Below, one piece after another: positions 11,565 to 47,693 of a DNA stretch of 63,590 nucleotides. The notes beneath the pieces were generated by a model. It was given only the letters and a program-made list of their open reading frames with translations. It had not been told where the DNA came from and did not search any database. Every line of letters starts with the position of its first letter. Position 1 is the first letter of the stretch. The translations under genes were made by a program, and so were the position numbers. Source of the DNA: Octopus bimaculoides. Lineage: Eukaryota. The DNA lies in NCBI RefSeq assembly GCF_001194135.2, contig NC_068986.1:5801018-5864607 (forward strand). Direction: 5' to 3'.

Positions 11565-11616
<52 letters not shown>

Positions 11617-13444: not shown

Positions 13445-14527
13445 CTGGTGCATACTGATAACCTTGAGCTGTGTTGGCAGCCAAATTACTGTAGTCTGAA
13501 TTTTGGTCTGTGTACATGTAATCATTGGGGTAGTCACCCCAATTGTAAGCCTGTGCTGTATTCTGGACATAGTTGACACCATCTTGGTTAATACCAGAAT
13601 TTTGAGGTTGAAGAACAGGATAACCATTATTATAAGTAGCAGCTACCTTTTGTTGGTAAGCATAGTTATTTCCCGAATAACCATACAAGTTCTGTTTCTG
13701 AGGAAACTGACTATTGTCTGAAATATACTGACTGTCCATATAATTCTGGTTAGCAGTTTGATAGCGCTGTCTTGATCTTTGTGGTAACTGAACTTGATTA
13801 TTAGCTCCAGAAAGCAACTCCTCTTGAGAATCACCATTGAGTCTATTGTAAGACTTTGGTTGGTTTATAGCAAACTTTTGATTTTCTTCAGCAATCAGAC
13901 CAGATGGTTTATGTCCTGATCCTACAAAACCTTGATTATCAACTTGGTTTATGCCTAACTGCTGGTGTTGGCTTGGGTAATTTGATATGAAATTTCTATT
14001 GCCAACATACTGAGGGTTCACATCAGGATGTTTTTGATATTGTGATAGCTGATTTTGATTCCATATTCTATTTGAAGAAGCTGAATTTGCTCTGTGTCTG
14101 TCAGTCTCTCGTGATGAAGGCTGAATTATATCTTCACTGAGAGAGAGTTTCTTTGAATTTCCATCATTTTCTTGAAGTAAATCCTTAGAGCCATCACTTT
14201 TAACCCAACCTTGATTCATGTTGGTGTTATGATTAGAAAATTGTTGTCCTTTACCTCTCTGAGCAACAGGTGGATTTGAAGTTGCAAATTCTTTTGGATT
14301 GAGTAATGCTTCTTTTGGTTTGTCCTTTTTTATCATAGTTTCAGTATTATACTTAGCTATTGGTAACTGACCTTTCTGTTTTAATAGTTTATTACTGCTT
14401 TCATCATGCTGAGATACACTAGGACCGACTGGTTTCAATTTTATTTTTCTGAACTTAGCAGTAGGCATTTTCTTGGGATTAGCATCCACTTGGTAAAGAA
14501 TTTCATTTTGACTTCCATCTTTGAATG
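13445..14527 (-). CDS. LRP11: LRP11-like exon 5 (long Q/N/S/Y-rich low-complexity region)
   Basis: Lies inside the 396-aa ORF 13350-14540. Acceptor tttgttcag|CA and donor CCAG|GTACTA give 1083 nt, phase 1-1, in frame with exon 4. Exons 1-5 total 2062 nt. Confidence 0.8.
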
Positions 14528-16747
14528 CTGAACAAATCATCGAAAAATTTCATGTTAATGCCAAGATAAATAAACAAGACATTTGTTAAACTATAAGTAC
14601 CGCCTTTGCTTCAAAGCAGCAAAACAATTTCAAATAACACTGAATAACTCTTCGCAATTGACAAAACTGTATGCTTTTATTTTAATATAAGTACAAAGAA
14701 AAAAATATTACCACAAAATGAACATTCAGAAATATAATTTAGAAATTAATATTGATAAAACTCAAAATAATTTAGTATATCACAGAGGATGATTCATAAA
14801 CAATTTTGAAATAAATCATTTTAAAGTGATATGAACCATTTTATGGTATTAGCTTTCTTTTTATTTTCATTTCATTTTCTAATCTTAAGAGACAAAACAT
14901 ATCTAACATCTACTATGAATTCAATCTCTAAAACAACCTTCAAAGTTTTATAAAAAGTGCTTTAAAAACATAGGGTTGTTTTAAATACAAATTATGAAAT
15001 TTGTAACTTTTTAATGATCAAAGAATTCAGTTTAATAGTTGGGGTGTAGAGGAAATTTTTAAAAATTTTAGCTATAAGTTTAAAGCTGAAAGGAACATAC
15101 CATATGCAAGAAAATAGTCTATAATCCAACTAATTTGATTACTTCTTAAAGCTTAAGGTCTTTTTAGAGTTAATTTTCTCAACAGTAGTACAGTGCATGA
15201 ACATATTTTAACAGAGTCAAAGCAAAATTGATTCTGGCATGAGGCACTGATATTTAAAAAAATATTATATAGCTCTTTACTATCAGTGTCAACTCCACTA
15301 CTAGGCGTAAGTAATGTAAGCAAATAGATAACTATAAATGAAATATATATGGCATATGTCATGTGAGTTACAGCTTGGTCCTGTAAATATAACATGAGCT
15401 ATTATTTGTAAATATCAAAAATGATATGTTATGAGGATAATTTAAATTTTATTACTAGTTAGGATTTGCAAAGAAATATATCTACTTATTTGATATAATT
15501 TAAGAGCTTCATTACAGAAAATTGTACCTCGTTTGTTATATTGAATTTTATTGCATTAAAATGTAGTAATTTATTTTGCATCTCAAACATATCATTAAAC
15601 TTACTTAATGTAATTATTTTATTGCAGTAGTTGAAAAATAGAATATTATAATAATTGTGCTTTTTACATAAAAGTGAAGCCTGAGAATTTTAGATGAGAT
15701 GAAATTTGGAGTTGTAACATTCACATCATTGTTAAAAGCATAAGCAATATAATCAGAAGGAAACAGTTTCATCTGGAAATTAAAACTAGATGACAGACTT
15801 TAAAAAGAAAGGGATGAGGATTAAAGCAATTCAAGGTGGTTATTTTTTTTTTTTTGTATGAATAATAATTTATCAAGGATACAAATAACAGAAGGAATTT
15901 ATTAAAAATAAATTAAAATAAAGATAAAAACAATATTTGAAGAAATAAATATATAAGGAAAAATGAGATAAATGGTATCTAAAATTGAAATATTACAGTC
16001 TTCAATTTGGATCATGATATCACTTATGTTATTGATTATAACATATGATCTTGGAGCAGGACATGAGAGGAAGTGATGAAAGTTAGATCTATTGATGAGC
16101 CTTACACAGAAGATGAAACTAAACTGAGAAAAGTAGTGATATGTTGTACTACAGACTTATGTAGTTCATGAGAAAAAAACAAACTGATGTTTAAAATACG
16201 ATCATGATGATGATAGTAATGATGCTGACAAGATGGATTTGTAAACTACATAAAGAAGTAGGAATTGTAGAAATTAAGATATATTTGAAACTAAATTTAC
16301 AAAAATATACATTTGGTTGTAAATTTAAAAAAAAAAATTAATCATAATTTCTGAAGGGAGGGATGAAGAAGAAAAATAAAATTTTTCAAAATAATTATAA
16401 TAATGATTCCTTTACTTGCCACAAGGGCACAAAATAATAATAATAACATTTAAATACAAATACTGAAAGAGGAAATGGAAGATAGTTATAACCAGTGGTT
16501 CTGTTACATTCTCAGAATGCATCAGCATGCAACATTCCATTTTAAGTTCAAATTAAAGTTAAAAAAATAAGAAAACAAACAAAATATTTACAATATATAA
16601 CAATAAAAAACAAACAGTTTTAGAGAATGATAAAAGGAAAAAATGAATAAATAAAAAAAGTAACATGATACGAGAAAGCACTTTGACATTAGTTTAGCTA
16701 AACTAAGGCAAAAATGAAGAGGCAAAAATAAGAAAGAAAATATTTAC

Positions 16748-16891
16748 CATTAGAAGAACATCCAAACTCATCTGAACCATCACCACATTGAGGTATTCCA
16801 TCACAAACATTTGCCAGTTCAATGCATTCTACACCAATACTCTTAGAACCTCTTTCCTCACACTCAAAATGATGTTTGTCACATTGTCTTC
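16748..16891 (-). CDS. LRP11: LRP11-like exon 4 (LDL-receptor class A domain)
   Basis: Acceptor tatttttag|GA; RQCDKHHFECEERGSKSIGVECIELANVCDGIPQCGDGSDEFGC contains the LDLa C..CDG..QC.DGSDE..C signature. 144 nt, phase 1-1; donor AATG|GTAAAT. Confidence 0.92.
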
Positions 16892-19690: not shown

Positions 19691-19804
19691 TGCAAATTCC
19701 ATATTTGATGATATAGCCCTCCTGACACCTACATTTCCCTTGGATACATTCTGCATGTCTGTCTTCACATTTATCTGCTGGTGTACACACATCATCAAGA
19801 GACA
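19691..19804 (-). CDS. LRP11: LRP11-like exon 3 (6-Cys EB/EGF-like module)
   Basis: Acceptor ctattttag|TG; VSLDDVCTPADKCEDRHAECIQGKCRCQEGYIIKYGIC. 114 nt, phase 1-1; donor GCA|GTGAGT. Confidence 0.85.
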
Positions 19805-20363: not shown

Positions 20364-22560
20364 TCATCATCTGTTGTCCATGCTGCCATGGGTTGGACGG
20401 TTTGACTGGGCTCGCATGCTAGAAGGTTGTACCAGTCTGATTTGGCATGGTTTTCTACGGCTGGACGCCCTTCCTAATGCCAACCACTCTGAGAGTGTAA
20501 TGGGTGCTTTCACGTGCCATTTGCAAGACACAAGGGTGTGTTTACGTGCCAATTTGTGTGACACTGGTATCTGCCATGACTGCGATTTTGCTTGGCTTGA
20601 TGGGTCTTCCCAAGCACAACATAATGCCAAAGGTCTTTGTCATTGCCTTCGTGAAACCCAACACTCAAAGGGAACTCAGCCAACTTGCCTCTGGGAAGCC
20701 GAACACTCAAAAGGAACTCAGCCACTTTGCTTCCATCAGGCCCAACACTTGAAAGGAACTCAGCCACTTTGCGTCCGTGAAGCCCAAAGTTCAAAAGATG
20801 ATCTTCACATGCCACTAGCACGGGTGCATTTGGCTTGACAAGTCCTCTCAAGCACAGCATATCACTAAGGCCTCAGTCATCAGTCACTGCCTCTGTGAAG
20901 CTTAAAGTTCGAAGGTCATGCTTCACCACCTCGTCTTCCTGGGTCTACGTCTACCACAGGTTCACCCCACAGTTAGAGACTGACACTTATTTACACAGCT
21001 GTCCTCATCCATATACATCACATAACCATACCAGCACAGTCGTTTCTCTTGTACACCACATCTGGTTCTTCTTATGCCTAACTTTTCTCTCATGATACTT
21101 ACACTCTGTTGAACATGCACACTGACATTGCACATCAAGTGAAGCTGAGTGGCTTCATTTCTTTCAAGCCTACACATGTCCTCGGCTGTCATGGCCCATA
21201 TTTCACTGCCATCCAGCATAGCTGTTCGCACACAGGCATCAAACAATCTCCTTTCACTTTGAGAGAGAGGCCCTTTGTTGCTAGCAGAGGTAGGAGCTAT
21301 CTGAACTTTGCCCAGCCTAATCTTATTCTCACAGCTACGCTCTTGGACCATCCACCTCCACTACTAACTTGGTCACCTAGATAATGGAAGCGATCTACTA
21401 CCTCTAGCTTGCCCCACTGGTAGTTGATGGAATCTATTTTCAGCGCATTTTCAGCATTTATTGTACCTGTGCACCGTCCACATACAAAATTTAGTTTCCC
21501 TGTTAACCTTCTTCTGATGTTGCTGCACCTTTTATGTGTCCAAAGCTTACACCAAGTGCATCTGATGAAGTTTCTACCTACACCTTTTCTACAGATTAAG
21601 CAGGGCCATCTACCAGAAGGGATTTGCGATTTGTCTACCTTCCTACTTACTATGACTTTGGTTTTTGCTAGGTTAACTCTAAGGCCCTTTGATTCTAGAC
21701 CCTGCTTCCATATCTGGAACTTCTCTAGTTCAGGTAGTGATTCAGCTATAAGACCAAGGTCGTCAGCATAGAGGAGCTCCCAAGGGCAGCCTGTCTTGAA
21801 TTCCTGTTATTGCTTGAAGGACTATGGTGAACCCCTACTTGTATCCTGAATTCTTTGCTGTACTTGTTGCCCACCCTCACCTTACTGATAGTATCCCTGT
21901 ACAAGGCAGGTATTTCTCCTGAAGTTGCCTTACCAGAAATCTAGCATCATTGGTGCTTCTATCTGATGCAAAACCAAACTGCATCTCATCTAGACTAATT
22001 CTCTACCTAATTAGCTATGACTCTCTCTGCAATTTTGATAACCTGATCCAACAATTTGATACCTCTGTAATTATTTCTATCTAAGGTATTACCTTTACCT
22101 TTTCAGCAGTTGACTATGGTGCTGCTACACCAGTCATTGGGTATGACTCCTTCATGAGCCATCTGATTTACAATATGGGTGACTAGACCATAACCCACAC
22201 CACCAGATATTTTAAGCATCTCAGTAGTGATTCCTGATGGGCTAGGGGTTTTCCCTGTCTTGATATCCTTAATTGCTTTTTCTACCAGGGTACTGTTGAT
22301 TAGGGTAGCTGGTTCCTCAATTGGCAAACTCTCCTCTTCCCATTAATTCTCTATGTTCAGCAGTCTTTCATAATGGTATCTCCAAGCCTCTTTCTTTGCA
22401 GACTCATTAAAAGCAAGTGCACCATCATCCATGCAGACACATTTCTCTCCTATGACATCACAATTTTCTCTCACACACTGTCTTGCAATCCAAAATACTT
22501 CAGTTCTTTGGTCCTCACGATGCTGAACATAGGCAAAACTTCTTTTCTGATGCATTTTAT
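20364..22560 (-). mobile_element. 5'-truncated RTE-clade LINE with continuous RT, PHD insertion, 3' UTR and (GAT)n tail
   Basis: KAIKDIKTGKTPSPSGITTEMLK; ELLYADDL (21759-21770); GLRVNLAKTK; RLCWYGYV; 3' UTR running to a catcat tail at 20364. Internal deletions and stops. Confidence 0.9.
20651..20797. repeat. 42-bp minisatellite (3.5 copies) in the RTE 3' UTR
   Basis: ggaactcagcc recurs at 20671, 20713 and 20755. Confidence 0.9.
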
Positions 22561-23470: not shown

Positions 23471-23531
23471 ATGCAAAAGTACATAGAATAAAGAAAGAAA
23501 ACTATAGCAAAATATATAAACATTTGGTTAC

Positions 23532-23808
23532 CTATTTTTGTTCTTTTTTTCAAAGTAGTAGGCTGGAATGTAGTAGGGGTTGTTGTTGTTGTTGTTGTAG
23601 TTGTGGTACTTTGTACTATAGAGTCCTTTGAAGAGCCTTGGTTATCGAGGCCTGCCAGCTCACTTTCATGTTTGATTGCAAGGTGTGCGTGAGATGTCTC
23701 CACTTTATCTTTCATTTGCTGGAAATTCATGGAGATGTAACTGTTGTGTGGGGCAAAAACACAAACACTTGGATTTCCGCAGTCAAAAAGGTAACAGCTG
23801 TAATCCTT
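23532..23808 (-). CDS. LRP11: LRP11-like exon 2 (end of MANEC domain, Thr-rich stalk)
   Basis: Acceptor ttttgcag|AAG; KDYSCYLFDCGNPSVCVFAPHNSY completes the MANEC CYLFxC motif; poly-Thr stalk. 277 nt; phase-1 donor ATAG|GTAACC. Confidence 0.88.
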
Positions 23809-26392: not shown

Positions 26393-26427
<35 letters not shown>

Positions 26428-31077: not shown

Positions 31078-31149
<72 letters not shown>

Positions 31150-32340: not shown

Positions 32341-34291
32341 AGGGAGTCAACAGTTGCTCATGGCTGACAATGTAATTTTGACATTTATAAATTGAAATTT
32401 CCAGAAAATAAATTGTACAGGAGATAGTGATGTGATGTGCATTTGGCATTTCTTGAAATGTTTGAACGTCTAGTGTTGCTAATCAAATTTTTAGATTCTA
32501 ATTAGTCTCAAGTCAGCCCAAATCTACATTATCCAATGCTAATTTTTTTTAAGATGGCAAAATTTGATTTGAGAGTGATTTCGCTGCTATTGCTATTTGG
32601 TTGTGTGAATACATAGATACACTTATAATATTGCACATAGAAAATTCAAGTCAAATGCTTTGGAATGAGAATGGTAGATGACATTGCTTGTTTAAGAATA
32701 TATGAAGTTAGTGACAATTGTGACCATATAGTATTTAGTACTTTGTTACATATGGTAAACCCTAAGAAGAGATAAGGGAATTCAGGTAAGCTTTTACATC
32801 AATTAAACATATATTTGGAGTAATATCCTGATGACACAAACGTCAAGTCAGAGACTTAAAGCCAAGACAACAACAAAAAAGTGAAAAAGGTTGTTAGTTT
32901 ATTGAGCACAGGTCAGCAACGGCCAAGCTGACTATGATGAAAGATGTTCCAACTATGACCATGCTATTTTTTACTCAAACACTGTATCTAAGACTATATT
33001 ACCTAATAGTTCCCTGGATGATAACATTTCAACTTTTGTTATTTTGGTCAACTCAGATTCGTCACCATAATGTAAATGCAAAAACACTTAAGTGTCAGAC
33101 ACACCAGAGATACAAAATGAAGTTAGATATGTACTAACTGTACAACTTAGAGGCATATGGATGTTCATGAAAAAGCCCCAAAATATGTTAGGATGTAATA
33201 CATGGTCAAAACCTGCTTTCAACCAGCAGCATCTGTTATGTAATATTCAAACCTTTTTAAGAAAACGTAGATACACTAATACAATGCAGGAATGTTACCA
33301 CAACACTTTCCGCCATCTGATCTGGACAAATGCAAAACACCAAAATAGCTAAAAATAGTATAAAATGAAATAAGATAATTTCCTCAATTGGGCCTACTCG
33401 CAGCTTGGTTGCAAGCACCTATGATTTTCTTCCATATGTAACATCTGACTATCATTTGCAAAAAGAAATCGAGTAGTAACGCCATTTGACAATGCCTTGT
33501 AACTTGGATTGAATGAGTCAACAAAAGAGCCTCAGAATGGTCGCTGCTAAAATAGCAATAAAATCTCTCCAAAATCACGCCACACTGCCTTAAAATAAAG
33601 GATACAAATCGATAATATAGTTCAGAGTATACCAAAGCTTGAAAAAAAAATTTGAAGAAATGGTCATGGTTAGATTGCCTTTGATTTATAGGTCAACTTG
33701 ATCAGGACTGACCAAGGGGCTAAGCAACAACTGGAATGGAAATCTAATTAGACCACAAACCAGATGGGTTCGTCCATACAAAAAAAGCATCAGGTAGTTT
33801 ACTGTAAAACGAGCTTGCAACTGAGGGATGGACGAGATCTACGAACAATAGTTGAACACACATGACTGCAGTATGTGGTTCTGGCAATGTTTGTTAATAA
33901 TAGAAATTAATATGGAAAATTGCACATCTGATCATTAAAGATTTATGCAACAACGCCACTCACAAAGCTCCGTATGTTTTCTCTCTCTCTCTTTCTCCCT
34001 CACACACACACAAGCTCTCTCACTCTGAATATGAAGTGGCGGTAGTGGTGGTGGTTAGTGATGTTTAACTGGATCCATATAATTTCTCCTTTCCTTGTTA
34101 CAGTTAGTGAAAATGAAAGAGAGAATCTCTGGGACAAGTGCATATCTAGCAGTAGCAGAAAAATGGGAGCGATGTAATAAGACACATAAACACATATGTG
34201 ATCGATTACAAAAGATGCGAAATATTAACTGACAGGTTCTTATGACATAAATGTGTATATGCATATATGAAAGAGAAAGACAGTGGGATAT

Positions 34292-34336
<45 letters not shown>

Positions 34337-34402
34337 NNNNNNNNNNNNNNNNNNNNNNNNNNNNNNNNNNNNNNNNNNNNNNNNNNNNNNNNNNNNNNNN
34401 NN

Positions 34403-34468
<66 letters not shown>

Positions 34469-35028
34469 TTCGAATTTATGTATCATAGAAACAAGAATGT
34501 ACTTATACGAAAAAAAATGAAGTGTATAATTTATAATGTGTAGCCAATATCAGCTTCGACTGAAAAGATCAATGATTAAGGGTGTTCTAACCCTGAACAT
34601 ACTCGGTTATTTTTCTTTCGTTTTCGAGCAGTATATTTTGGATTACTTAATAATGCAGCCTTGCTTGTTTAAGACAGTAAAGGCGTGGTTTAAAGGAGAT
34701 TCTTCTGTTATTTCCAGCATGTCGACCAACTACGTAGAGGCCTTAATTCATTGGTTTGAGTAGTGATCGTGATAATACTTTATAATATTCTTGTACAGCT
34801 TTCAATAATCTAAATTTTGTCCCTGAATGGGGCAAAATATGTATTCAAGTACATTCGTTAGAAAAGAAAGAGAGAGAATGTGTATATGTATAAGATCGCC
34901 ATATCACTGAATGAAACGACTTAAAAAAAAAGCTGTTGGACCTATTCAACAAACAGAACAGTTGTTTTAGTGACCTCACCTATTCTTTCTTATGATTAAT
35001 TACATCGAGCATAGGCAAACTGCTCCTA

Positions 35029-35060
<32 letters not shown>

Positions 35061-35288
35061 AGTAATTAACCCATCTTTCTATACCTTATTTATTAGTGTA
35101 TTTTACTTATTTAAGACGCAATGGAAAAGTGTGCTTTGAGTGAGATTTGGCAGTTATGCATGACAAGTCGCACGATTAAGAAGTGGCTCTCCCATTGACT
35201 CGATTATAAAGAGGTGTGAGATGTCGTGCTGGGATATCCTCAATATAAAAAAATAACAAATATATATATATACATAATGCACATTTAC

Positions 35289-35732
35289 CTTATTCTCGAA
35301 TATAGCTTCATTACATCCTTTTGTGTCACAACATTTCTTGGCACAATCCGCACTATTGTCAGCCTGAGCATATTTCATGAATTTTGCTCCCGCTGTCAGA
35401 GAGCTGTTTGTTTTGATGATGACGCTTGTATTCCTGCTATAGTGGCAGACGCCATGCTCAGCCTGTGATCCAGAAACAGATAACGTACCCGAATTATCCT
35501 GATCGGGTGTTTTTATATTTCCTCGCAGATTATCTGCCTGTTTCGTAGGTATTTGTGTTTCACTCTGGGCATCACTGTTTTGCAACAAATCCTGTTGGCC
35601 CCGCTTCGATCGTTCCAGTCTCTTACTCAACCTAATAGCTATAGAAGGTCCTTGTTCAAAGTCCTCAGCAATAAATTCTGAAGCTAAACAGTATAAAAAT
35701 ATACACGGAAAGATAAAAAGAGGTTTCATCAT
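35289..35732 (-). CDS. LRP11: LRP11-like MANEC/LDLa protein, coding exon 1 (signal peptide, RSKR furin site, N-terminal part of MANEC domain)
   Basis: ORF MMKPLFIFPCIFLYCLASE (hydrophobic signal peptide), LERSKR, then IIKTNSSLTAGAKFMKYAQADNSADCAKKCCDTKGCNEAIFENK with MANEC-type Cys spacing. 148 codons; phase-0 donor AAG|GTAAAT at 35288. The symbol is a family-level assignment. Confidence 0.85.
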
Positions 35733-35809
35733 TGTTTTAAATTAAAAAAAAGGACAAATTATAGGTAACTCATAAGCAATAACTAGACAAGCATTACACA
35801 AGACGGTCA

Positions 35810-35880
35810 ACGAACGGAACCATTTTTGGAGACGCGAGCATGCGTTAGCGGAAGTTATTGGAAATGACATTTCGGAATGA
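35810..35880 (-). promoter_or_regulatory. Candidate TATA-less promoter of the LRP11-like gene
   Basis: CpG-rich patch about 100 nt upstream of the ATG with ETS-type GCGGAAGT (35848-35855), NRF1-like GAGCATGCGT (35836-35845) and a YY1-like CCATTTT. Motif matches only. Confidence 0.4.
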
Positions 35881-37084
35881 AAATAACTTCGAAGAAAATC
35901 TCAAACATACGTCACAAAAGAAAACAGATTAATTTCTTTGCTGTTTATTTATTTTACACATATATAAAGTCAAAAAAAGAAAACAAGAAAAAAAAACAGG
36001 GTTCCGTTCAAATATGAAAAAAAAAAAAAAGAATTCTAATTGATCTTTTTCACATATAATAAAACAATTGTGTTTCGTTTAATTTTGCGATTCCATAAAT
36101 CAAATTTTATTTAACAAAATTTTAATTTTTAACGGTCGAGAGAAAAGAAGAGGAAAATTGCATATATAATCATAAATATATTTTTTGATATTTTGATATT
36201 TTTGTCATTCATTTCTTAACAGCACTGTGGAAATGGTAATGGCTTTAAATAGATTGTGATGCAATGTTTACAGATGTCTTAGTATATCTATAAACATTGT
36301 ATTCAAATTCATTTGTTATTTCTTCTTTTGCGATTATACACTTGTATGCCTTGAACACAAATAGAGTTATTTGAATAAAATACACAGGAAAATAAAAATA
36401 AATATATTCTTTCACATATGTGTTTAGCAAAACAGCCCACGCATACTAAAGAAGGAAGATAACTCTTGAAGAATCTAAACTAAACTGTTTTAGATATATC
36501 AAGCAGATGGGAGAGCATACATGCAATAACAGTCTTCTTGATTATAGAAAGTGAATTACTTTTGGTGTGATGTTTGGTGTTTGTAATCAAATTGATATCA
36601 GAGCAAGTTACTTAATATTGATTTCATATTTTGGTACAAGGCCAGTAATTTTGGGGAAGGGGATAAGTCAATTACATTGACACCAGTGCTCAACTGGTAC
36701 TTATTTTATTAACCCCAAAAGGACGAGATGCAAAGTCAGTCTTGGTGGAACTTAAACTCAGAACGTAAAATCAGTAAAAATAATGCTAAGCATTTGGCCC
36801 AGCACAAGAACAATTCTGTTAGGGCACTGCTTTGGAGTTGTGTAAAATTTAAAACTAAAAGTTGTAAAGGATTACATTTACAGTAGACACATGAGCCGAG
36901 GGTGCTGCTGTACTCCATCTCTGATTGCAGGAGCTGATGTCTCATCAGGCAGTGAAACAGCTCTGTTGGTGTTTCAGCCTCTTCCACCATGATGCCAGAG
37001 CTGCCCGGGGCCACTGATCAATGTAGGCAACAAAATTGTCACACAACACAAAGTTTGTTGAGTTAGATGTTGCACCTCTGGGCC

Positions 37085-37260
37085 AGATGTTTCTACCACC
37101 CTCACTGCTCATTTTTGCTATATCACTCATCCTCTCTCATGAGCCAGATGTAATGATTGGCTTTCTCAGTGGCTCTGACAATTTTCTGCCAACATTTTTT
37201 TTGTCTCATTTGCAGTCAGTCCAAAACTCTTGAGCACTGAGTTAACTTTTGTTCCAACAA
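37085..37260 (-). mobile_element. Short 3' fragment of a second REL-type LINE
   Basis: Frameshifted VLKSFGLT..KKNVGRKLS / ATEKANHYIWLMRED matches the C-terminal AEKASHWIWLKR-type motif of this clade. Confidence 0.5.
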
Positions 37261-37749
37261 ATCCTAGTTCTTGAGAGGATCCAGATGTTGTAAAGAAGCT
37301 AGCGTGATCATTGCCTGAGTAGCTGTTTCCGCGCTAGTGGCATGTAAATAGCACCATTTGAGCATGATCGTTACCAGCGCTGCCTTACTGACACTTGAAA
37401 AAACATTCGAGCATGTGAAAAAATACTGGCACGTGAAAAGCCATTCGAGCAAGGCCGTTGCCAGTGCCGCTGGACTGGCTCCTGTGCAGGTGGCACATAA
37501 AAAACACCATTTTGAGCGTGGCCGTTGCCAGTACCGCCTGACTGGCCCTTGTGCCAGCAGCACGTAAAAGCACCCACTATACTCTCGGAGTGGTTGGTGT
37601 TAGGAAGGGCATCCAGCTGTAGAAACTCAGCCAGATCAGATTGGAGCCTGGTGCAGCCTTCTGGTTTGCCAGTCCTCAGTCAAATCATCCAACCCATGCT
37701 AGCATGGGAGGCGGATGTTAAACGATGATGATGATGATGATGATGATGA

Positions 37750-37797
<48 letters not shown>

Positions 37798-39185
37798 TAG
37801 GTCTTACGATCAGAAATGATATGGTAATGTGATAGCTTTAAATAAATACTATTTACAAATACTAGAAATGCTTGCATTGATAGGTGAAGTCCTGAATATG
37901 TGTATAAGTGGCAAATCAGTTGTCATTACAGTATAGGAGAAAATGCTTTACAGTGTTTATTCCTACTCTCTGTGCTTAGCATTCAAATCCTACTATAGTT
38001 AACTTAGCATTTCCTCCTTCCATGGTTGGTAAAATGAAGTACTAGATCAGGTTGGTGGTTTAGCAGAATTGACAGAGCATTAAAGTGGATGCCTTGTGGT
38101 ATTTGTTCCAGTTCTTTATGTCCTGACTTCTTAAGCAGTAGACTTAATTTGTTACCTTGTTCAATGCTATTACCTGCTCATGGTTTGTTTAACCTTTATC
38201 ATTTAAGCTGGTTATATTCGGCTCAAATATGCTACATGCTTTATGTTCAAATCTGCCAGATCTGGTCTCTTACACCTACCCTACAATGTCATTCTAAAAA
38301 TAAACTATCTCATCAAAATCTCAAAGTGACGTGATAATGCATGATTAATTCAAAGCAATGTGAATGTGGTAAATAGCTTGCTTACCAGCCACATGGTTCT
38401 GGGTTCATTCCCACTGCATGGCACTTTGGGCAAGTGTCTTTCACTATAGCCTCAGGCCGACCAAAGCCTTATGAGTGGATTTGGTAGATGAAAAATGAAA
38501 GAAGCCCATCATATATATTATATATTATATTATATTATATATNNNNNNNNNNNNNNNNNAATCATCATCATCATTTAATGTCCATTTTCCATGCTGGTAT
38601 GGATTGGACGGTTTGACTGGGGACCGGCAAGCCAGGAGGCCTCACCAGGCTCCAAAGTGATCTGGCAATGTTTCTACAGCTGAATGCACTTCCTTACACC
38701 AATCACTCTGAGAGTGGGGTGAGCTGGCATCTACCACGTTCGGATGGTGCTTTTTACGTGTCACTGGCACGGGGAGCTGGTCAGGCGGTACTGGCAACAA
38801 CCCATGCATGAACAGTGCTTATTGCATGCCACCAGCGCAAGAGCCAGTTAGGCGGCACTGGTATTGGCCACAGATATCATTTCCATTTGATTGTGATTTG
38901 ATTTTTGATTTTACTTGATTCAATAGGTCTCCTCAAGCACGGCATGTCATCCAACGATTCAATGGTACTTTTTAAATGCGCTGGTTATGCGACACTAGTA
39001 TAGGCTATGGCTGTGATCTCACTTTACTTGCTAGGTCTTTAGTAGCTTTCTGAACTTTGCCCAAGCTATTCTTATTCTAGTGGCAATGCTCTCAGAGCAT
39101 CCCCCTCCCCCCCATTACAAACTTGGTTGCCTAAGTAGCGGAAGCTATCAACTACTTCTTGTTTCTTCCCCTGGCATGTGATGGA

Positions 39186-39452
39186 ATCCATTTTCTGAGC
39201 ATCTGCGGTGTTTATTATCCCTGTGCATCTGCCACACACAAAAGCTATCATCCCGGTTAAACTTCCTTTGATGTTGTTGCATCTCTTATGCCTCCATAGC
39301 TCACACTGGGTACATCCTATGGAGTTTCTACCTACACCTTGTCAATAGATTGAGCATAACCATCTACCTGAAGGGGTTTGTGATGTGTTTACCTTCCTAC
39401 TTACTAGGACTTTGGGTTTTGCAGCATTGACTCTAAGGCCCTTTTGATTCTA
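39186..39452 (-). mobile_element. RTE LINE fragment (PHD region) abutting the PLE
   Basis: Homologous to 21430-21700: GLRVNAAKPK...GRNSIGCTQCELWRHKRC...FVCGRC. Confidence 0.8.
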
Positions 39453-39962
39453 AACCTTTTCAGAGAGGAAAGGCCTCTCTGAAAAGATACAAAAGATATG
39501 CAGCCCATATGACATCAAGACAGTATTCAAGAGTAATACAACACTTCGTAAATATCTCCTTCGAGTAAAACCTCCAAAAGAAGAGAATATGACCAAAAAC
39601 TGCATGTACTCCATCTCATGCAGCTGTGGTAGGTTATACAAAGGCGAAACATGGCACCCCCTCAAAATAAGGGTAGACGAACATCGCGAAGCTGTGACAC
39701 GAGGAGATATTGATAAATCAGATATAGATGATCATGTATGGAAAAATGGAGACCACTTCTTCCTGTGGGATGAAGTTAAAATAATAGACAGAGAACACCA
39801 CTGGAAAATACGAAAACTAAAAGAAACAGCACATATGCTAGGACACAACAACCTCTTAAGCAGACCGAGTGCAGATATGAATAGAATATGGGAACCGGTA
39901 TCAAGGAAGGACAGGAAAATATTAGATTTATAAGCCCTAAAATTCACTCCATAATTGCCCAT

Positions 39963-40035
39963 GGGCATATGGCATAGTGGTTAAGAGCGCAGCCTACTAA
40001 CCCCAAGATTCTGAATTCAATTCCAGGCAGTGACC
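39963..40035 (+). other. tRNA-derived (Ser-like) Pol III-type head within the PLE 3' region
   Basis: A box TGGCATAGTGG (39970-39980), anticodon-like loop CTACTAA (39994-40000), degenerate B box GAATTCAATTCC (40013-40024). The acceptor stem does not pair, so it is not a functional tRNA. Confidence 0.65.
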
Positions 40036-40104
40036 TGAATAACAACAATAATAACATCGAAAAATACCTTAGAAATGAGAACCTAGGTTAGAAATTTCCC
40101 CCAA

Positions 40105-40150
40105 GACACCTGATGAAGGCTGGAGGGTATATCAGCCGAAACAATGTGTT
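40105..40150 (+). ncRNA. Minimal type I hammerhead ribozyme motif (degenerate stem III)
   Basis: GACAC-CTGATGA-A-GGCTG(GAGGGTATAT)CAGCC-GAA-ACAA-T-GTGTT. Catalytic boxes present; stem I (GACAC/GTGTT) and stem II pair; stem III reads ACAA rather than a palindromic ACGT. Confidence 0.7.
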
Positions 40151-40910
40151 AACAACAAACAAGATGAGGACAAATATCCATCAAATGTANNNNNNNNNNT
40201 ATCAGCCGAAACAATGTGTTAACAACAAACAAGATGAGGACAAATATCCATCAAATGTAAATAAAGTACATAATTCCTCATCTCTTAAATATAGAACTGT
40301 ATTATGTATGTGTTAGTCAATATACATGCACATACTGTGATTTATATATACTAGATAAGATATAATATTGGCTTCAAATTTTTGGCACAAGGCCAGCAAT
40401 TTCGGGGGAAGGATTAAGTCAGATTGATACCAGTGCTCAACTGGTACTTATTTTATTGACCCCAAAATGATGAAAGGCTAAGTTGACCTTGGCAGGAGTA
40501 AATGTAAAGATGGATGAAATGCTGCTTAACATTTTACCTGGCATTCTAACAGTTCTGCCAGCTTGTCACCATTGGAAAAAGATTCAATATCATTAGAAGA
40601 CAATTATAGAAGATGAGAAACTCTTATTTAGCATAACACTTTAGTTATGTAAATTAATGTCTAAGTATGTCATCTTGGTTGCAAAATTTGTGAAAATCAA
40701 TAATATTTTAAAGCTGAATTTTTATTTCTTTAAAATTATATGATGATCAGAATTGCTTATTGATGTCTTTTATCTCTCAGCATACCTTCAGCAAATCATT
40801 TGTTGATGATTCCCACATTGAAAGTGTTAAGAAATTCAAATTCAGACTTCTAATCCCATCAAACAGTATGAAGAGATGGTTATCTTTTTTGTATTAACTG
40901 TCCTCTAGGG

Positions 40911-41120
40911 CAGGGATCTCTAACCACTGGACTGTAGACCAACACTGGGCCATAAATCATTTGGTACTGGGATGCACAGAAACAATAAATTAAAAAATTT
41001 TATTTCTATTTTATTGGCCATCGCAGTCTCCAGTGTGCTTTTAGCATTTTATATGCATTATATATGTAATAATCAAATTATGGAAAAATTGTCTTCTATG
41101 AAACTGGTTTGTGGGAACAT
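40911..41120. mobile_element. Decayed hAT/Charlie-like (MER1-type) non-autonomous element
   Basis: Left end cagggatctctaaccactggactgtagacc; subterminal ggaaaaattgtcttctatgaaactgg motif typical of MER1-like Charlie elements. Confidence 0.5.
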
Positions 41121-41211
41121 CATGCATTTTTATGTGAAATTCTAAAATATACTATATATTAAAAATGACATACTTTTGACTCACTTCGGGTGAGTAGTGG
41201 GGGGTGACCTT

Positions 41212-41815
41212 TAATATAGGCTGATATTTCTTGGTATTGATAGACAGACACTTTCCAGTTAACCATAATTATAGAAAGATCTTCAACAGACATAACTTAA
41301 AAATCAGTTTCAGCTCAACTGCTAATTTTAAGAACATAATCACACACAACACACAAAAGCCGCAATATGAAGCCAGCTGTTCAGGCAGAGATAAAAACTT
41401 GTGCCCGCTAAATGGAGCTTGCATGTTCAAAACCATCATTTATGAGGCCACCATAGATTCTGTATCCACTAAGGACGTAGTTTCCACGAAGAAATACGTG
41501 GGCCTCACGGAGGGTAATTTCAAGGCCAGATTCAATAATCACACTTTGAGTTTCAGGCACTGGGACAAAAGAAAAATGACAAAATTATCCAGTCATATAT
41601 GGTCTTTAAAAGTTAAAGGTGTCAGTTACAACATCCATTGGAAGATCCTAGCCAAGTGTAAACCTTACACCAGCAGCAGCGGAAGGTGCAGTCTATGTGA
41701 TATGGAAAGATGGCTCATCTGGAAAGGCAGCTTAGACCCCACCACATGTCTAAATTCAAAGACTGAACTTTTCAGATCATGTCCACATGTGACCAACTAT
41801 TTGCTACGTTTTTAG
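41212..41815 (+). mobile_element. Second Penelope-like element fragment (Cys/His-rich GIY-YIG subtype)
   Basis: NIG*YFLVLIDRHFP...CPLNGAC..IIYEATI...KYVGLTEGNFKARFNNH...LSSHIW...WKIL...CSLCDME...LNSKTEL...CPH. Typical PLE C-terminus. Confidence 0.85.
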
Positions 41816-42229
41816 TCCCCCTGAGTTTACTGATAGGACTTGCTTTATATTTTTGTGTCTATAAGCTTTTTATCTCTCTATAATTATTACTTACATTTCT
41901 TATATATTTTTTAATATGTTTTAATATTTTTACTAATAGGACCTGCTGATGGGACTGTACTGATAGGTTTCTATATTGTGTCTTTTTTACTTGGATTTTA
42001 TATTTTTATATTTTTTAATATTTTAAATTATTTTAATGTTTTTTTTACATAATTATAAGGTTAATGTTTTTGTATTTTTCCACATATATTTTTCTGTTTT
42101 CTCCCCTCCACCCCTTTTTTTCCTGTACACCTATAGGCATGTACAAGGAACTTTATATATGCGTACTTGTGAGTGTGCGCGTGGATGTTGCATATGTAGA
42201 TATATGCGTGCGTATATAGAGATATGGGT

Positions 42230-43790
42230 GGGGTAGCAAATAAATCAGCTTTCACCTACAGAAGGGTTCCATCTCTGGTTTCTTGTCAACCACACTCACC
42301 TTCAGTTGATCTCCGCTGCCACAGATATATTCCACATGATTTTCTTCAGTTGCTTGGGTTCCAAGCTAATCTTCTACAAGAAATAGTGCAATGATCTTGC
42401 TGGGAAGCTGCTACAAGCAACTTCAGTGGATAATGAGGCTGTGTGCCTTGAGCCTCATCGACTAGGTACTGGTATTTTTGGTGAGAAATGTTAATCCTCC
42501 AATGACATTGTGAATTCAACTGTGGTGATCGGTTTTGCACTCCTGGATAGAATAACCATGAATGATCTGAGAGATGTCACAGTTACCTCTTCTGGAAAGA
42601 TGAGCTTGCCTTTCAAATTCCCTTGCATTTATCAGTTAGATGCTTGATGTATAATAGAAGACAAGTTTCCCACAGCTATTTTTGTCTTAGGAGTCTCATC
42701 ACATTCTTTAAAGAGTTTGATACCTTTGAGTGGTGACGTCTGTTGTTTGTCAGCCTTAACTCTCTGCAGGTCCACTCATGTGACGATTTCTTTAAGAGCC
42801 TCTAGAGTTTTCTAGTGCTCTATGGCATCTGGTCAAAAATGTGGTTCAGAATGTGAAGAGTTGCTTCACACAGCTTGCAGGATAGGTTTTGTTCTTTGCC
42901 CAGATTTTAAGGTTGTTTGTGGTTAGAAAGGGGTCAGTGACAGTACATAGAAGGAAGGACAACTTTTCCTAGTCAGTACTCCAGAATTTTCTCCAGAACA
43001 GTGGTCACTTGAGTGCCTGGTCCCATTGCATACACTATCATTGTCAGGCAAGCACTACTGTTTTTGTATTGTCTTCTTTTACCTTTCAGATGCTCTGCAC
43101 TATGAGCCCTTTCTTGCCTTTGGTATTGAACACTGTTCCACCTCTTATTGTTTTAGTTACTAAGTTCTGTCTATCTTTCACAGACTACTCCAACAATCTC
43201 TTTGCACCCTCAGTACATTTTATCTTCTTTCACAGCTTTCATTCCACACTACCATTTACAGCTTTGTTGACATGTCTGATACACTCATCCTCAGACAGTA
43301 GCAATGTACTTGACTGGTTTCACCTTAGTGGCTTTGAATTCCTTCAGCCCCGATGGTAGGTGGAGTTTGAAGGTCCTTCTGTACAGGTTGACTGAGCTGA
43401 AATTTGAGGGAGTAGCCACCCAACTTCCAATTTACTGCAAATCTCCCCATCACCTCTACCTGAATCATGGGGAAGTCATAAAGAAGGAATGGCCATTGCA
43501 ATTTGAATATTTGCTGTTCTGGAAGAAATTCATCTTAAACATCCCAAGTAGTTGGTTATTGTCAAATGTTTTGAGCTAGCTGTTTTGATGAGTCATAGTA
43601 TGTTTGGCATTACTGTTGTACTACAGGATGTTGTCAGAATTCTTCTGAAGGCATTGTATTGCTTTTTCCTTTCTGGATTCAGGATACTCAGATCACAAGA
43701 TTTCTCTGGGTTGGATTTTGTAAGTGACCATGCAAGTATCTTCTCCAGCAAGCTCAAGGTTAGCCTTATTCCTTGGACTGATGGTGTTAT
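42230..43790 (-). mobile_element. Decayed REL-endonuclease non-LTR retrotransposon (HERO/NeSL-like), 3' portion
   Basis: Minus-strand remnants of the zinc knuckle (CKLCEATLHIL near 42860), SLRSFMVILSRSAKPITTVEFT (PDMV-like), KYQYLVDEAQG, EVACSSFPARSL and WLTRNQRW. Many stops. Confidence 0.7.
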
Positions 43791-43811
43791 ATATACATAT
43801 ATATCAGAGAA

Positions 43812-45022
43812 ATTGCACTATCTCATAAATAATGTAGTTTTTTACACTTATTTTTCAAAATTAAAATAAACAAAGTTTTTTTCTTATCTAAAATATACTC
43901 TTCTTCATTTCCTACAATGCTCTTCCATCTATCTGGTAGATTTGCAAGAGCCCTCTTCCAAAATTCACTTGTCCGTGATGAAAAATACTCCTCTGGTACC
44001 GTTCTGACTTTGTCTACAGAATTCATATTTTTTCCATTCAAATGATTTTGAAGACTGCAGAATAAATGATAATCTGATGTGGCAATGTCCAGCAAATATG
44101 GTGGGTGGGGCATCATTTCCCATTCAAAATGCTCCAGCCTTTGGAATGTCTTTCTTGCTGCATGTGGCCGAGCATTATCCTGATGGAAGAACACCTTTCG
44201 TCTTGAAACCGAAGATTGTTGTCTTTCTTCTGGCACTGACTGAAGCCACTCAAGCTGCTCGCAGTAGATCTCCTTTGTTATTGTTTGGTTTGGATTTAAA
44301 AGCTCTAAGTGGACTAAACCTTTCATATCCCACCAAACAGATAACAACACTCACTCTCTTCAACACTTGACATTTTTATAGAGAACCTATTTCTCATCAC
44401 CAGTCACTATTCAGTCCAAAAGAGTTTAATTCGTGAGACATGACAGCAAAGAATCCCTTCACGCGATTAGATTAAGAAAGTTTGGAGGAACCCATTGACC
44501 CAATTTGCTGACTTTTCCGATGGCAAACAGGTGTCAATGAATGGTTGAATGATCAAATCCAAGCATCTCTGCTAGTTCCTCAACAGTTACAATGGGATTT
44601 TGTACCAACAGAGTTTGCAGGAAGTCCTTGTCAATCTCTACAGATCTTCCAGGACGAGACTTGTCATCTAGGCTGTAGTTTCCGGCTTGGAATTTCTGGA
44701 ACCACCGTTGACACTGGCTTGTGCTAATTGTCTGACCCCCATATACTACATTAACATTCTTCGCACTTTCCATTGTGTTGCTACCTTTATTGAACTCATA
44801 ATGCAAAATATGCTGAATATGCTCCTTTACAACTTACATTATAGCTTTTTAAAAAATAACTATTAAAATCGAACTGCACTCTTCAAAACTTGCACTAAGA
44901 ATAAATACAAGGTAAAATTACTACCTGCTATTCTAGCAAGTTGATGCAGTTAGTTTATCCCGTCATCCGCTGACTTTTAGTTCATACAATTGAAAAATAA
45001 GTATTATTTATTGGATGACTCA

Positions 45023-45024
<2 letters not shown>
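43812..45024 (-). mobile_element. Decayed mariner (DD34D) DNA transposon, about 1.2 kb
   Basis: N-terminal HTH ORF 44534-44806 (QRWFQKFQAGNYSLDDKSRPGRS); IVTGDEK near 44400; ORF 43823-44350 with WWDMKG, HQDNARPH and D-x34-D (SDYHLF). Degenerate TIRs ATTG..ATC..ATAAATAAT at both ends; stops and frameshifts. Confidence 0.9.
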
Positions 45025-45064
<40 letters not shown>

Positions 45065-45083
45065 NNNNNNNNNNNNNNNNNNN

Positions 45084-45143
<60 letters not shown>

Positions 45144-46569
45144 ACATACATACAAACATAGATACATGTGAGGACTTAAAGAGAGTAAAAGGAAGAAAAT
45201 AAAAAAATAAAAAAAGATGCATCTATTTGCGATAGATATATGAACGTAATTTCTATCCAAGTATGGATTTTGCTATGGATTTTGCCATGGGGTTGCAATG
45301 GGAGTATTGATAACTTTGATTTCGCCAAGGATTGGGCAAGTGTTTCTGTTGATTACGGATATAGTTCTATTGTTCTTTTTCTTCACCTCAAATAAGAATT
45401 GAACTGCTCCACCGCTAGGTGTTTTAGTTACTAAAAAACTTTCAAAAACTTTCGGCGACACCAGGCTGCCAAATCAGATTGGAGCCTGGTGTCGCCTCCT
45501 GGTCCACCAGTCCTCAGTCAAATCGTTCAACCCATGCTAGCATGGAAAGCGGACATTAAACGACGACGATCCTGTTACTGTAATCATATAACAGCAGAAT
45601 CTACACACTTCTTCCTCTTTGTGCTACTTGTTGCCTCTGCCACTCCTTGGAACCACTTCCTTCAACATCCTCCCTTATTTTCGATATCATCCCTTCTCTG
45701 TTTTCCACTGATTACCCCTCTCTTTACTTCCAGATATATTTCCCTCTCCTCTAAGTTACCTTTTGGGTACTGCTATACCTCATTTTTAACACCCTCTCAT
45801 ATCTGCTATCTTTCTCAACATTTTCTCATATCTACCATTGATATTCCCCTTCACTTTTGCCCTCCCCCCACAAACTAACTATACTGAACCTAACTATGTG
45901 TACCTTTGACCACCATCTCTCTCTCTCTCTCTCCACCTTCCAACACTGCACATCATCTCCCTATTTCCTTGTCTCTGCCAGTACCGCCTGACTGGCCTTC
46001 GTGCAGGCAACACGTAAAAGCACCCACTACACTCTCGGAGTGGTTGGCATTAGGAAGGGCATCCAGCTGTAGAAACTCTGCCAAATCAGATTGGAGCCTG
46101 GTGTTGCCATCTGGTTTCACCAGTTCTCAGTCAAATCGTCCAACCCATGCTAGCATGGAAGGCAGACGTTAAACGATGATGATGATGATGATGATATATA
46201 TATATACTCACACACACACTCATAATGTGTGTGTGTGTCTAGAAATGACTAAATTAGTTTCTTAATTTTTTGCGCATATCTTTATGGTTTGAAATTATTG
46301 CACAATAGGAAAAAGATCAGTATTATTAACATTTTATTTCACATGAAAATAACATTTTAATTCAATTTCTGATTTAAGTAAAAGCATCTTCCAAGGGAGG
46401 TAACTTTAAATGACTAAAGTAAAGTGACGTGTATGTTAAGAGTATGTGTGTGTGTGTATGTGTGTTAGAGAAAGCAGAAAAGGGATAAAGCGAGTAAGAG
46501 GGGGGGGGGTGTCTATATGCAAGGTCAGGCAACAGAAGCAGCAGCAGCAGCGATCGTTTTTGTGCTTTG

Positions 46570-46621
46570 TATAAAAGCAAACATTATCTCGTCCAGCAGT
46601 TTGCTAGCTGGAAGCGTAAGT
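46570..46621 (+). promoter_or_regulatory. Candidate TATA + Inr core promoter of PPP1R14, followed by a splice donor
   Basis: TATAAAAG at 46570-46577; Inr-like GCAGTTT with A at 46598 (28 nt from the TATA start); GTAAGT at 46616-46621; CpG-retaining flanks. Confidence 0.5.
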
Positions 46622-46944
46622 AACAACACATTCTGTCTATTTTCGTCGCGTGTTAGATTTTTCACTCACTCACGGCATTTCGACTGATCTTAGTGAACTC
46701 TTCTATGAACTCTCTCGTGGACTAATTGTTGCCGACGCCGTAGACCAGCACCACTTTCTTGAGATTGATGATTTTACCTTAAGTTATATTAGCAAGCAAG
46801 CACTCAAATCTGTGATACTACTTTAATATACGCGTAGTCGAAACTGGCTCTCGCAGATTGTTGATTGTAGGTATCGTTACTAATGATCAAAGTATCAATT
46901 TGTATATAGTATCTTTTAATTCTGTTATAATTATTTGCTATAAC

Positions 46945-46980
<36 letters not shown>

Positions 46981-47414
46981 TATGTATACTTTAAAAAAAC
47001 AAATATCAGTTATTGTTTGACGAACATCAAGTAATTCAAGCAGAGAATATATAACTACAAACTGACAAAATGTGCTTGGTATAACAATCTTGTTTTGGAT
47101 TATTAATTAATTTACAGAGAGTTACATGGACACGTGTCCAAATTTACTGCCTCAACTGGAAGTTGAATTCGTTTTTTATTTCAAAGTTAGTTTAACAGAT
47201 AAAGTTAACTTTTTGCTTCATCTCCCAGGGCGGCATAGGTAGACAACGTAACGCCGGAGAGAGAAAGAAGAGAAATAAAATTAGTTCATAGCTACCAACA
47301 TTTTTCCACGAGAACTCAAGATTCTATTTATTATTTAAAATAATTCATAACAAATTGAAAATCTAAAGTTTGCAGTGTCGACTGGTTCCTTGTGTTGGGA
47401 CCTTCTCTCCAAGA

Positions 47415-47693
47415 ATGGCGACCACAACATACTCTTTGGACAAAGTAGCCACTGGTAGTAGCAATTCTAGTAGTTCCCAGCATCGTTCCCCTGCTGCTCG
47501 TTCAGCCACATCCCCTTCATCATCAGCTCATAACCGATCGGTAAATTTCAACACACAGCGAGAGGCGATTAAAGAACAAAAAAAGAAATACTTGACCGCC
47601 AAGTATGGTCAGCATCAAATGTCTTTGATTAGGAAACGTTTAAAAGTTGAAGATTGGCTTGACGAAAGATTACGGTTCTTGTACGGTTGTAAG
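47415..47693 (+). CDS. PPP1R14: Protein phosphatase 1 regulatory subunit 14 family (CPI-17/PHI-1/KEPI), first coding exon
   Basis: MATTTYSLDK...RSVNF (RVxF-like motif, 47535-47549)...KKKYLTAKYGQHQMSLIRKRLKVEDWLDERLRFLYGCK. Matches the family T-x-KY...RKRLxxEEW...L..LY.C motif, with the inhibitory phospho-Thr at codon 47595-47597. 93 codons; phase-0 donor AAG|GTAAGA. Confidence 0.9.

Follow-up and report, generated by a model that had tools for sequence, protein, structure and literature searches.

The Head-to-Head LRP11-like and PPP1R14 Genes of Octopus bimaculoides: A New Case of an Ancient Microsyntenic Pair

Introduction

Ancient microsyntenic pairs, in which unrelated genes lie adjacent across protostomes and deuterostomes, are known in bulk by the hundreds, while few of them have been documented gene by gene. 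About 600 such pairs have been reported and assigned to co-regulated and genomic-regulatory-block (GRB) classes (Irimia et al. 2012, Genome Res 22:2356; PMC3514665). In this study, we describe a pair of this kind in a 63,590-bp stretch of the Octopus bimaculoides genome (contig NC_068986.1, positions 5,801,018 to 5,864,607; hereafter, the window), in which the 5′ half of an LRP11-like gene on the minus strand and the 5′ half of a PPP1R14 gene on the plus strand stand head to head. The two genes are unrelated and adjacent in protostomes and deuterostomes, as in the pairs reported previously, with the deuterostome side of the comparison coming from vertebrates. The head-to-head arrangement, together with co-expression of one human counterpart, matches the "co-regulation" class, whereas the octopus spacer is far longer than a classical bidirectional promoter.

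The closest described systems are three vertebrate adjacencies. The human gene order is PCMT1-LRP11-RAET1E-ULBP2-ULBP1-ULBP3-PPP1R14C-IYD (PMC3548333), the goat order DLL4-VPS18-RHOV-SPINT1-PPP1R14D-ZFYVE19 (PMC10763158), and the sheep order DPF1-PPP1R14A-SPINT2-C19orf33-YIF1B (PMC11591336); in Xenopus, zebrafish, and cavefish, spint2 likewise adjoins ppp1r14a (PMC7460850). In zebrafish, dlb and dlc flank two ppp1r14a copies, which has been attributed to the teleost duplication, while the neighbours of PPP1R14B in gar are unrelated genes (PMC7460850). These published orders agree with what the first-pass annotation, made from the letters alone, had stated for the vertebrate pairs, namely LRP11/PPP1R14C with the RAET1/ULBP cluster between them, SPINT1/PPP1R14D, and SPINT2/PPP1R14A. 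In each pair, a gene for a MANEC/LDLa-family or derived Kunitz type-I membrane protein adjoins a PPP1R14 gene, as in the octopus, and Delta-family genes lie near two of them, DLL4 by SPINT1 and dlb/dlc by ppp1r14a. The vertebrate pairs differ in that there are three copies, that a PKD domain, plus two Kunitz domains in SPINT1/2, is found where the octopus has an EB module, and that the mammalian LRP11/PPP1R14C pair has the RAET1/ULBP cluster inserted between its partners. SPINT2 has lost both MANEC and LDLa, and LRP11, SPINT1, and SPINT2 are probable duplicates of one ancestral gene. The human pairs lie at 6q25.1 (LRP11-PPP1R14C), 15q15.1 (SPINT1-PPP1R14D), and 19q13.2 (SPINT2-PPP1R14A).

In the literature, no paper was found that sets LRP11 beside PPP1R14C as synteny, and the spint2-ppp1r14a adjacency in vertebrates was the only form of the pair found described. 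The pair is also absent from the supplements of two microsynteny studies (PMC8851819, PMC9023564), and it may still be in the list of Irimia et al. 2012. The octopus LRP11-like/PPP1R14 pair is presented as a new and well-supported case of a known class. It is an unusually clean one: the partners are single-copy in invertebrates, the orientation is kept from molluscs to a priapulid and an insect, vertebrates have three copies, and coleoid cephalopods retain it. The locus is, moreover, compact and testable for what binds neighbouring genes, be it promoter sharing, enhancer sharing, or a common domain.

Conservation of the Gene Pair

To compare the octopus locus with other protostomes, the genomic context of PPP1R14 orthologues was surveyed, so that the linkage was viewed from the PPP1R14 side. 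The head-to-head pair is present in the chromosome-scale assembly of Argonauta hians (7.5 kb between the genes), in Priapulus caudatus (4.5 kb), in Patella caerulea (about 0.3 kb between annotated genes), in Crassostrea angulata and a second oyster assembly (about 4 kb), and in the beetle Phyllotreta striolata (about 1 kb). The oyster neighbour has no Pfam record; its exons, recovered by tblastn, encode MANEC, EB, and LDLa in that order. An intron that splits MANEC at an identical position, after ...E[NDEQ]K, is shared by octopus, oysters, Patella, Priapulus, beetle, and mite, which supports the orthology of the neighbours.

The mite Oppia nitens has both genes on one strand, 3.6 kb from each other, with the LRP11-like gene downstream and two small genes, for mitoribosomal S18 and a clathrin-adaptor sigma, between them (10001-16350); here, the linkage has outlived the orientation. 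The LRP11-like and PPP1R14 genes also share one scaffold in Penaeus japonicus (448,156 bp) and in Plakobranchus (2,248,540 bp), and one chromosome in the spider Parasteatoda, co-location in these three being inferred from identical scaffold lengths. The PPP1R14 gene of Limulus has no annotated neighbour, and tblastn gave no match within 10 kb, a result that is uninformative rather than negative. In Phyllotreta, a gene of 374 amino acids (aa) with an fn3 domain (3469-5912, plus strand) is nested on the opposite strand in an intron of the LRP11-like gene.

The pair was therefore inherited across Mollusca, Priapulida, and Arthropoda, and it existed at least in the last common protostome ancestor. 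Since vertebrates have three paralogous copies, it is most parsimoniously placed in the bilaterian (nephrozoan) ancestor. Inheritance rather than accident, with the pair present in the protostome ancestor and also in the bilaterian ancestor and then multiplied by the vertebrate whole-genome duplications, is accordingly a reading that we hold with high confidence. The proposal of the first-pass annotation that the linkage is older than the protostome–deuterostome split is supported by the protostome pairs and the three vertebrate adjacencies. It had named an unlinked pair in other invertebrate lineages as a refutation, and the pair proved to be linked in Argonauta, Patella, two oysters, Priapulus, and Phyllotreta, and in rearranged form in Oppia. 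It had also suggested that the pair survived coleoid rearrangement, and both octopus and Argonauta retain it; coleoid genomes are described as heavily rearranged (PMC9023564).

Identity of the Minus-Strand Gene

Assignment of the minus-strand gene to the LRP11 family relies on its MANEC region and on its orthologues. Exon 1 alone, used as a query against an index of 5.8 billion proteins, gave no match. With the MANEC region as query, HMMER was run exhaustively on 1.84 billion representatives and gave 251 matches, the best 150 of which were inspected. A C-terminal D[YF]L[IV]NGMY(L) tail occurs in 75 of these best 150, most of which have exactly one LDLa domain, and a Kunitz motif occurs in none of the 150. 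The tail-bearing homologues include frog LRP11 (P0264), and members from a mayfly and Plakobranchus have already been named LRP11 by NCBI; further homologues come from oysters, gastropods, nemerteans, crustaceans, mites, a spider, flies, and a centipede. The Argonauta orthologue, whose MANEC domain scores 57.8 bits in Pfam, can be aligned to frog LRP11 over two collinear stretches, of which one runs from MANEC to LDLa (E=4e-18) and the other covers the juxtamembrane region, transmembrane (TM) helix, and tail (E=6e-19). The sole solved relative of the MANEC region is the MANSC domain of SPINT1/HAI-1 (E=1.2e-7). Human LRP11 and HAI-1/SPINT1 have been reported to match each other by BLAST at E=1e-24 and to have MANEC, PKD, LDLRA, and TM regions in common (PMC12580866).

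The region between MANEC and LDLa varies between lineages, being a PKD domain (K319L-like) in vertebrates and an EB module in spiralians, and holding neither in arthropods. PKD is present in frog LRP11 (E=4.9e-21) and absent from the Argonauta, squid, oyster, nemertean, mayfly, and mite orthologues. Likewise, a six-frame Pfam scan of 12-36 kb found no Kunitz or PKD domain in the octopus gene. The octopus gene thus resembles the LRP11 family in its signal peptide, MANEC, one LDLa, and low-complexity stalk, and its cephalopod orthologues add a TM helix and a tail of the form ...[DE]xDYLINGMYL, like that of frog LRP11. It differs in having an EB module in place of PKD and a large optional Q/N/Y-rich exon. 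Judged from sequence comparison, assignment to LRP11 is justified at the family level, with the vertebrate PKD domain lacking and the tail known from the orthologues only. The collinearity with frog LRP11, the common C-terminal tail, and the match to the SPINT1 MANSC domain uphold the relationship to LRP11/SPINT1 that had been claimed for this gene. A SPINT-type inhibitor was also considered and rejected, as no Kunitz motif is found in the window or in the best 150 homologues.

The PPP1R14 Gene

On the plus strand, the window contains the first coding exon of PPP1R14 and part of its first intron (Table 1), and none of the exons sought further downstream (exons 2-4) was found in the window. Exon 1 is 96-97% identical to the octopus transcript proteins P0001 and P0002. 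On its own, it scores 19.5 bits against the Pfam PP1_inhibitor model, below the cut-off of 22.4, because the window holds just one third of that domain; the full-length transcript protein P0002 (96% identical) carries PF05361, as do full-length orthologues.

PPP1R14 belongs to the CPI-17/PHI-1 family, whose members inhibit PP1 in a phosphorylation-dependent manner, and the octopus protein has the PHIN core of this family, in which the K-Y-L-T-A-K-Y threonine corresponds to that of V-T-V-K-Y. The octopus YLTAKY aligns with VTVKY of CPI-17/PHI-1 so that a Thr occupies the inhibitory Thr38 position, and the T, K, and Y of the motif are invariant in 15 aligned sequences, among them human CPI-17 and PHI-1. 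This Thr is a putative inhibitory phosphorylation site. In contrast to the CPI-17/PHI-1 family, the octopus protein has a three-residue insertion, GQHQMSLI versus DRKEL, and the gene is single-copy in invertebrates. In protostomes, the motif ERKKKYLTAKYGQHQMSLI[RK]KRL.VE.W is nearly invariant from cephalopods to chelicerates and Priapulus. A profile search with PPP1R14 gave 2180 matches, and the best 120 of these 2180 are all from protostomes. The ppp1r14 family has been called "vertebrate specific" in a 2020 paper (PMC7460850), a statement that the protostome matches contradict.

The Spacer and the Two 5′ Ends

The start codons of the two genes are separated by 11,682 bp, and no host gene was detectable in this spacer by Pfam. 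A mariner/Mos1-type transposase relic and short interspersed nuclear element (SINE)-like repeats occupy parts of it, along with a fragment of the retroelement that also lies in LRP11-like intron 1 (Table 1). This is in line with the description in the first-pass annotation of a minus-strand LRP11-like gene and a plus-strand PPP1R14 gene diverging across about 11 kb that contain only transposable element (TE) debris. Two spacer open reading frames (ORFs), at 39589-39933 and 41231-41815 on the plus strand, have motifs that recall the GIY-YIG endonucleases of Penelope-like elements; the Pfam GIY-YIG match of the latter was not significant (E=0.036).

The CpG observed/expected (o/e) ratio is 0.29 across the window, and the middle of the spacer and both gene bodies are strongly depleted, as expected of germline-methylated DNA. 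CpG is retained in only two stretches of the window, and both coincide with the 5′ end of a gene. This retention provides an independent mark of both putative promoters and indicates that they are separate in octopus. For octopus, one core promoter serving both genes was rejected, as the two CpG-retaining regions lie about 10 kb apart with depleted, TE-filled DNA between them. Classical bidirectional promoters have start sites within about 1 kb of each other and one CpG island, which is not the situation in octopus. Annotated gene ends are close together elsewhere, at about 0.3 kb in Patella and about 1 kb in the beetle.

Why the Two Genes Stay Together

Overall, the locus is probably best explained as the 5′ halves of two unrelated genes that stand head to head as an inherited ancient pair and may be held in place by cis-regulation around their 5′ ends. 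Both genes would depend on cis-regulatory DNA around and between these ends, the first intron of PPP1R14 included; a breakpoint between the partners would be selected against, and insertions would be tolerated. The common element would more likely be an enhancer or a chromatin domain, and less likely one core promoter working in both directions, since the CpG regions of octopus are separate and about 10 kb apart and the RAET1/ULBP cluster is inserted between the mammalian partners. The conserved head-to-head orientation and the short spacers in most genomes are compatible with shared cis-regulation. In addition, SPINT1 (r=0.883) and PPP1R14D (r=0.896) both correlate with an epithelial signature in the NCI-60 panel (PMC4062414), and this tracking of one signature lends indirect human support to co-regulation. 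That shared cis-regulation around the divergent 5′ ends is indeed what keeps the pair together is a step that we infer throughout, and it is put forward tentatively, as an idea somewhat short of probable.

Several points weigh against this explanation. The 11.7 kb of CpG-depleted TE debris in the octopus spacer exclude a tight bidirectional promoter, and the RAET1/ULBP cluster between LRP11 and PPP1R14C excludes one in mammals (PMC3548333). The neighbour survey that had been proposed for this locus bore out the linkage in molluscs, Priapulus, and arthropods, and failed to do so in three other genomes: around PPP1R14 of Lingula and of Tetranychus, a reach of 10 kb did not contain the partner, and Halotydeus has the two genes on separate scaffolds. 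The constraint is thus not an absolute one. Furthermore, the survey comprises protostomes and published vertebrate gene orders. The divergent orientation of the vertebrate pairs is presumed, the gene-order texts being silent on strand.

Linkage could also be conserved without promoter sharing if the locus were a genomic-regulatory block, in which one gene is a bystander whose large introns hold the enhancers of the other; enhancers placed in this way had been the example given in the first-pass annotation. The extent of PPP1R14 would suit such a block, as a gene for about 145 aa spans about 100 kb in Argonauta, 65 kb in Limulus, 40 kb in Patella, and 28 kb in Priapulus, and in octopus its intron 1 exceeds 16 kb, with the CpG-retaining region reaching about 3.3 kb into it. 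The linkage has, moreover, outlasted the octopus TEs, the mammalian RAET1/ULBP cluster, and the Oppia rearrangement, which fits long-range regulation better than promoter sharing. Nevertheless, neither partner encodes the sort of developmental transcription factor that typically anchors such a block (Irimia et al. 2012, PMC3514665), the head-to-head orientation in six of the seven linked invertebrate cases is not required by enhancer-in-intron models, and PPP1R14 is small in mites and oysters (0.6-5.8 kb), so we consider a block of this type unlikely. Slow decay without any shared regulation would be expected if the ancestral spacer was short, offering a small target for breakpoints, and if breaks harmed two promoters. 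The spacers of 0.3-4.5 kb in Patella, beetle, oysters, and Priapulus are in keeping with this, as is the loss of the pair in Lingula, Tetranychus, and Halotydeus, which decay predicts. Such neutral persistence seems quite improbable given that five or more deeply diverged lineages have kept the pair for over 500 million years, in spite of large spacers (11.7 kb in octopus, a whole gene cluster in mammals), and that it is also kept in the heavily rearranged coleoid genomes (PMC9023564). Three of the four vertebrate PPP1R14 paralogues retain such a neighbour, with PPP1R14B in gar being the one that does not, and human SPINT1 and PPP1R14D are co-expressed (PMC4062414), neither of which neutral decay would lead one to expect. 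The five N gaps in the span of the pair, whose sizes and joins are unverified by the sequence itself, might finally point to a chance re-association or a mis-join. This is extremely improbable, as the same neighbour and orientation recur in Argonauta and five further genomes belonging to three phyla, our own estimate for about 2x10^4 genes puts the chance of a particular immediate neighbour at about 1e-4 per genome, and gaps interrupt neither the exons nor their order.

Beyond an inherited pair held by cis-regulation around its 5′ ends, the LRP11-like and PPP1R14 genes could act as one functional unit under common regulation dating from the bilaterian ancestor, with shared enhancers driving both in the same cells, and their proteins might share a pathway. 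Such a pathway may, for instance, control myosin phosphatase or PP1 close to a receptor, in cells of epithelial or contractile type. We regard a functional unit of this kind as doubtful; if real, it would represent a deeply conserved regulatory and functional coupling of two poorly understood gene families. The epithelial co-expression of SPINT1 and PPP1R14D is a hint on the biology of LRP11 and of invertebrate PPP1R14.

Structure of the LRP11-like Gene

Five coding exons of the LRP11-like gene lie in the window, spanning 35732 to 13445 on the minus strand; their splice sites and reading frame were checked (Table 1). Exons 1-4 match the proteins of Argonauta hians (P0148, 547 aa) and of squid type (P0149, 567 aa) residue for residue over the splice junctions. 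The MANEC domain is recognised by Pfam on exon 1 alone (PF07502, E=1.9e-11). The EB module of exon 3 scores slightly below the Pfam cut-off (22.8 bits, E=1e-4), and that of the Argonauta orthologue reaches 25.8 bits. Exon 4 shows the six cysteines and DGSDE of an LDLa domain by motif scan and scores 23.1 bits against Pfam Ldl_recept_a (cut-off 24.1); the corresponding Argonauta exon, 71% identical to it, scores 26.6 bits.

Exon 5, which is part of a 396-aa ORF in a genome of 35% GC, is missing in the 547-aa Argonauta hians protein. Since its phase is 1-1, the exon can be skipped. Long and short oyster isoforms (1029 aa versus 506 aa) differ by a similar low-complexity block, and the gastropods Littorina and Haliotis are likewise; exon 5 is therefore probably a conserved optional stalk cassette exon, the counterpart of the long oyster and gastropod isoforms. 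Such low-complexity blocks have led to NCBI misnames for some homologues, such as "ARID1A-like", "trithorax osa-like", and "unc-10-like".

In the Argonauta and squid orthologues, a stalk and a TM helix follow, and the tail closes with ...RKGRALHSNEADYLINGMYL (EADYLINGMYL-type). In the octopus window, tblastn with the C-terminal half of the Argonauta protein did not find the TM and tail exons, and no credible TM exon was found between the LDLa exon and exon 5 or downstream of exon 5. Because these exons are present in the orthologues, the LRP11-like gene continues past the left end of the window. Position 13445, which had been taken for the end of the gene, is instead an internal splice donor.

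Assembly and Repeats

The window has a G+C content of 34.6% and eight N gaps, five of which fall in the span of the gene pair, two in intron 1 of the LRP11-like gene and three in the spacer. Microsatellites of (TA)n, (GA)n, or (CA)n border most of these five gaps, and none of the exons of the LRP11-like gene nor exon 1 of PPP1R14 is touched by a gap. The Argonauta and squid proteins run without a break across the junction of exons 1 and 2 of the LRP11-like gene, which means that the gaps conceal no coding exon. A mis-join at the octopus locus is further argued against by the chromosome-scale Argonauta assembly, which has identical gene order and orientation. The true length of the spacer is uncertain by the sizes of its N gaps. 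In the 40150-40240 region, a direct duplication of AACAACAAACAAGATGAGG stands on either side of a 10-N gap, which suggests an unresolved overlap or a tandem duplicate at a scaffold join and not lost sequence.

Table 1. Features of the octopus window, with positions counted from its first letter.
Feature	Position	Strand	Remarks
PPP1R14 coding exon 1	47415-47693	+	93 codons, core KKKYLTAKYGQHQMSLIRKRLKVEDW; ends GCK, donor AAG then GTAAGA
PPP1R14 intron 1 (partial)	47694-63590	+	>16 kb in window
LRP11-like exon 1	35289-35732	-	ATG at 35732; signal peptide MMKPLFIFPCIFLYCLASE; N-terminal three quarters of MANEC; ends ...FENK, donor GTAAAT
LRP11-like exon 2	23532-23808	-	Final MANEC cysteines (KDYSCYLFDCGNPSVCVF; KDYSCYLFDCGNPSVCVFAPH) and Thr-rich linker; phase 0 in, phase 1 out
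LRP11-like exon 3	19691-19804	-	EB/EGF-like Cys-rich module; phase 1-1
LRP11-like exon 4	16748-16891	-	Single LDLa domain; phase 1-1
LRP11-like exon 5	13445-14527	-	361-codon Q/N/Y-rich low-complexity exon; phase 1-1; donor CAG, then GTACTA, at 13445
LRP11-like intron downstream of exon 5	1-13444	-	Without TM and cytoplasmic-tail exons
Divergent spacer	35733-47414		11,682 bp between start codons; three N gaps
CpG-retaining stretch	34000-36500		o/e 0.7-1.15; LRP11-like 5′ end; putative unmethylated promoter
CpG-retaining stretch	46000-51000		o/e 0.7-1.25; PPP1R14 5′ end and first ~3.3 kb of intron 1; putative unmethylated promoter/regulatory region
Mariner/Mos1-type transposase relic	43823-44806	-	Two broken ORFs; Pfam Transposase_1 4.4e-13, HTH_48 2.5e-13
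Piece of intron-1 retroelement	39040-39456		418-bp; in spacer
N gap	26631-26777		LRP11-like intron 1
N gap	34337-34402		LRP11-like intron 1
N gap	38543-38559		Spacer
N gap	40190-40199		Spacer
N gap	45065-45083		Spacer
SINE-like copies	36613-36804, 37526-37758, 38188-38716, 40363-40563, 45466-45570, 45976-46206		Plus at least 10 further sites
Non-LTR (long terminal repeat) retrotransposon relics	20965-22342, 31465-31911	-, -	One element; in LRP11-like intron 1, in the orientation of the gene

Rfam and tRNA scans across the window gave no match. About 19% of the window matches some other part of it. The SINE-like repeats belong to two to three families of about 100-230 bp, with 75-95% identity, and are dispersed in the introns and the spacer. 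The retrotransposon relics in intron 1 of the LRP11-like gene bear a reverse-transcriptase YADD motif and related C-terminal ORFs.

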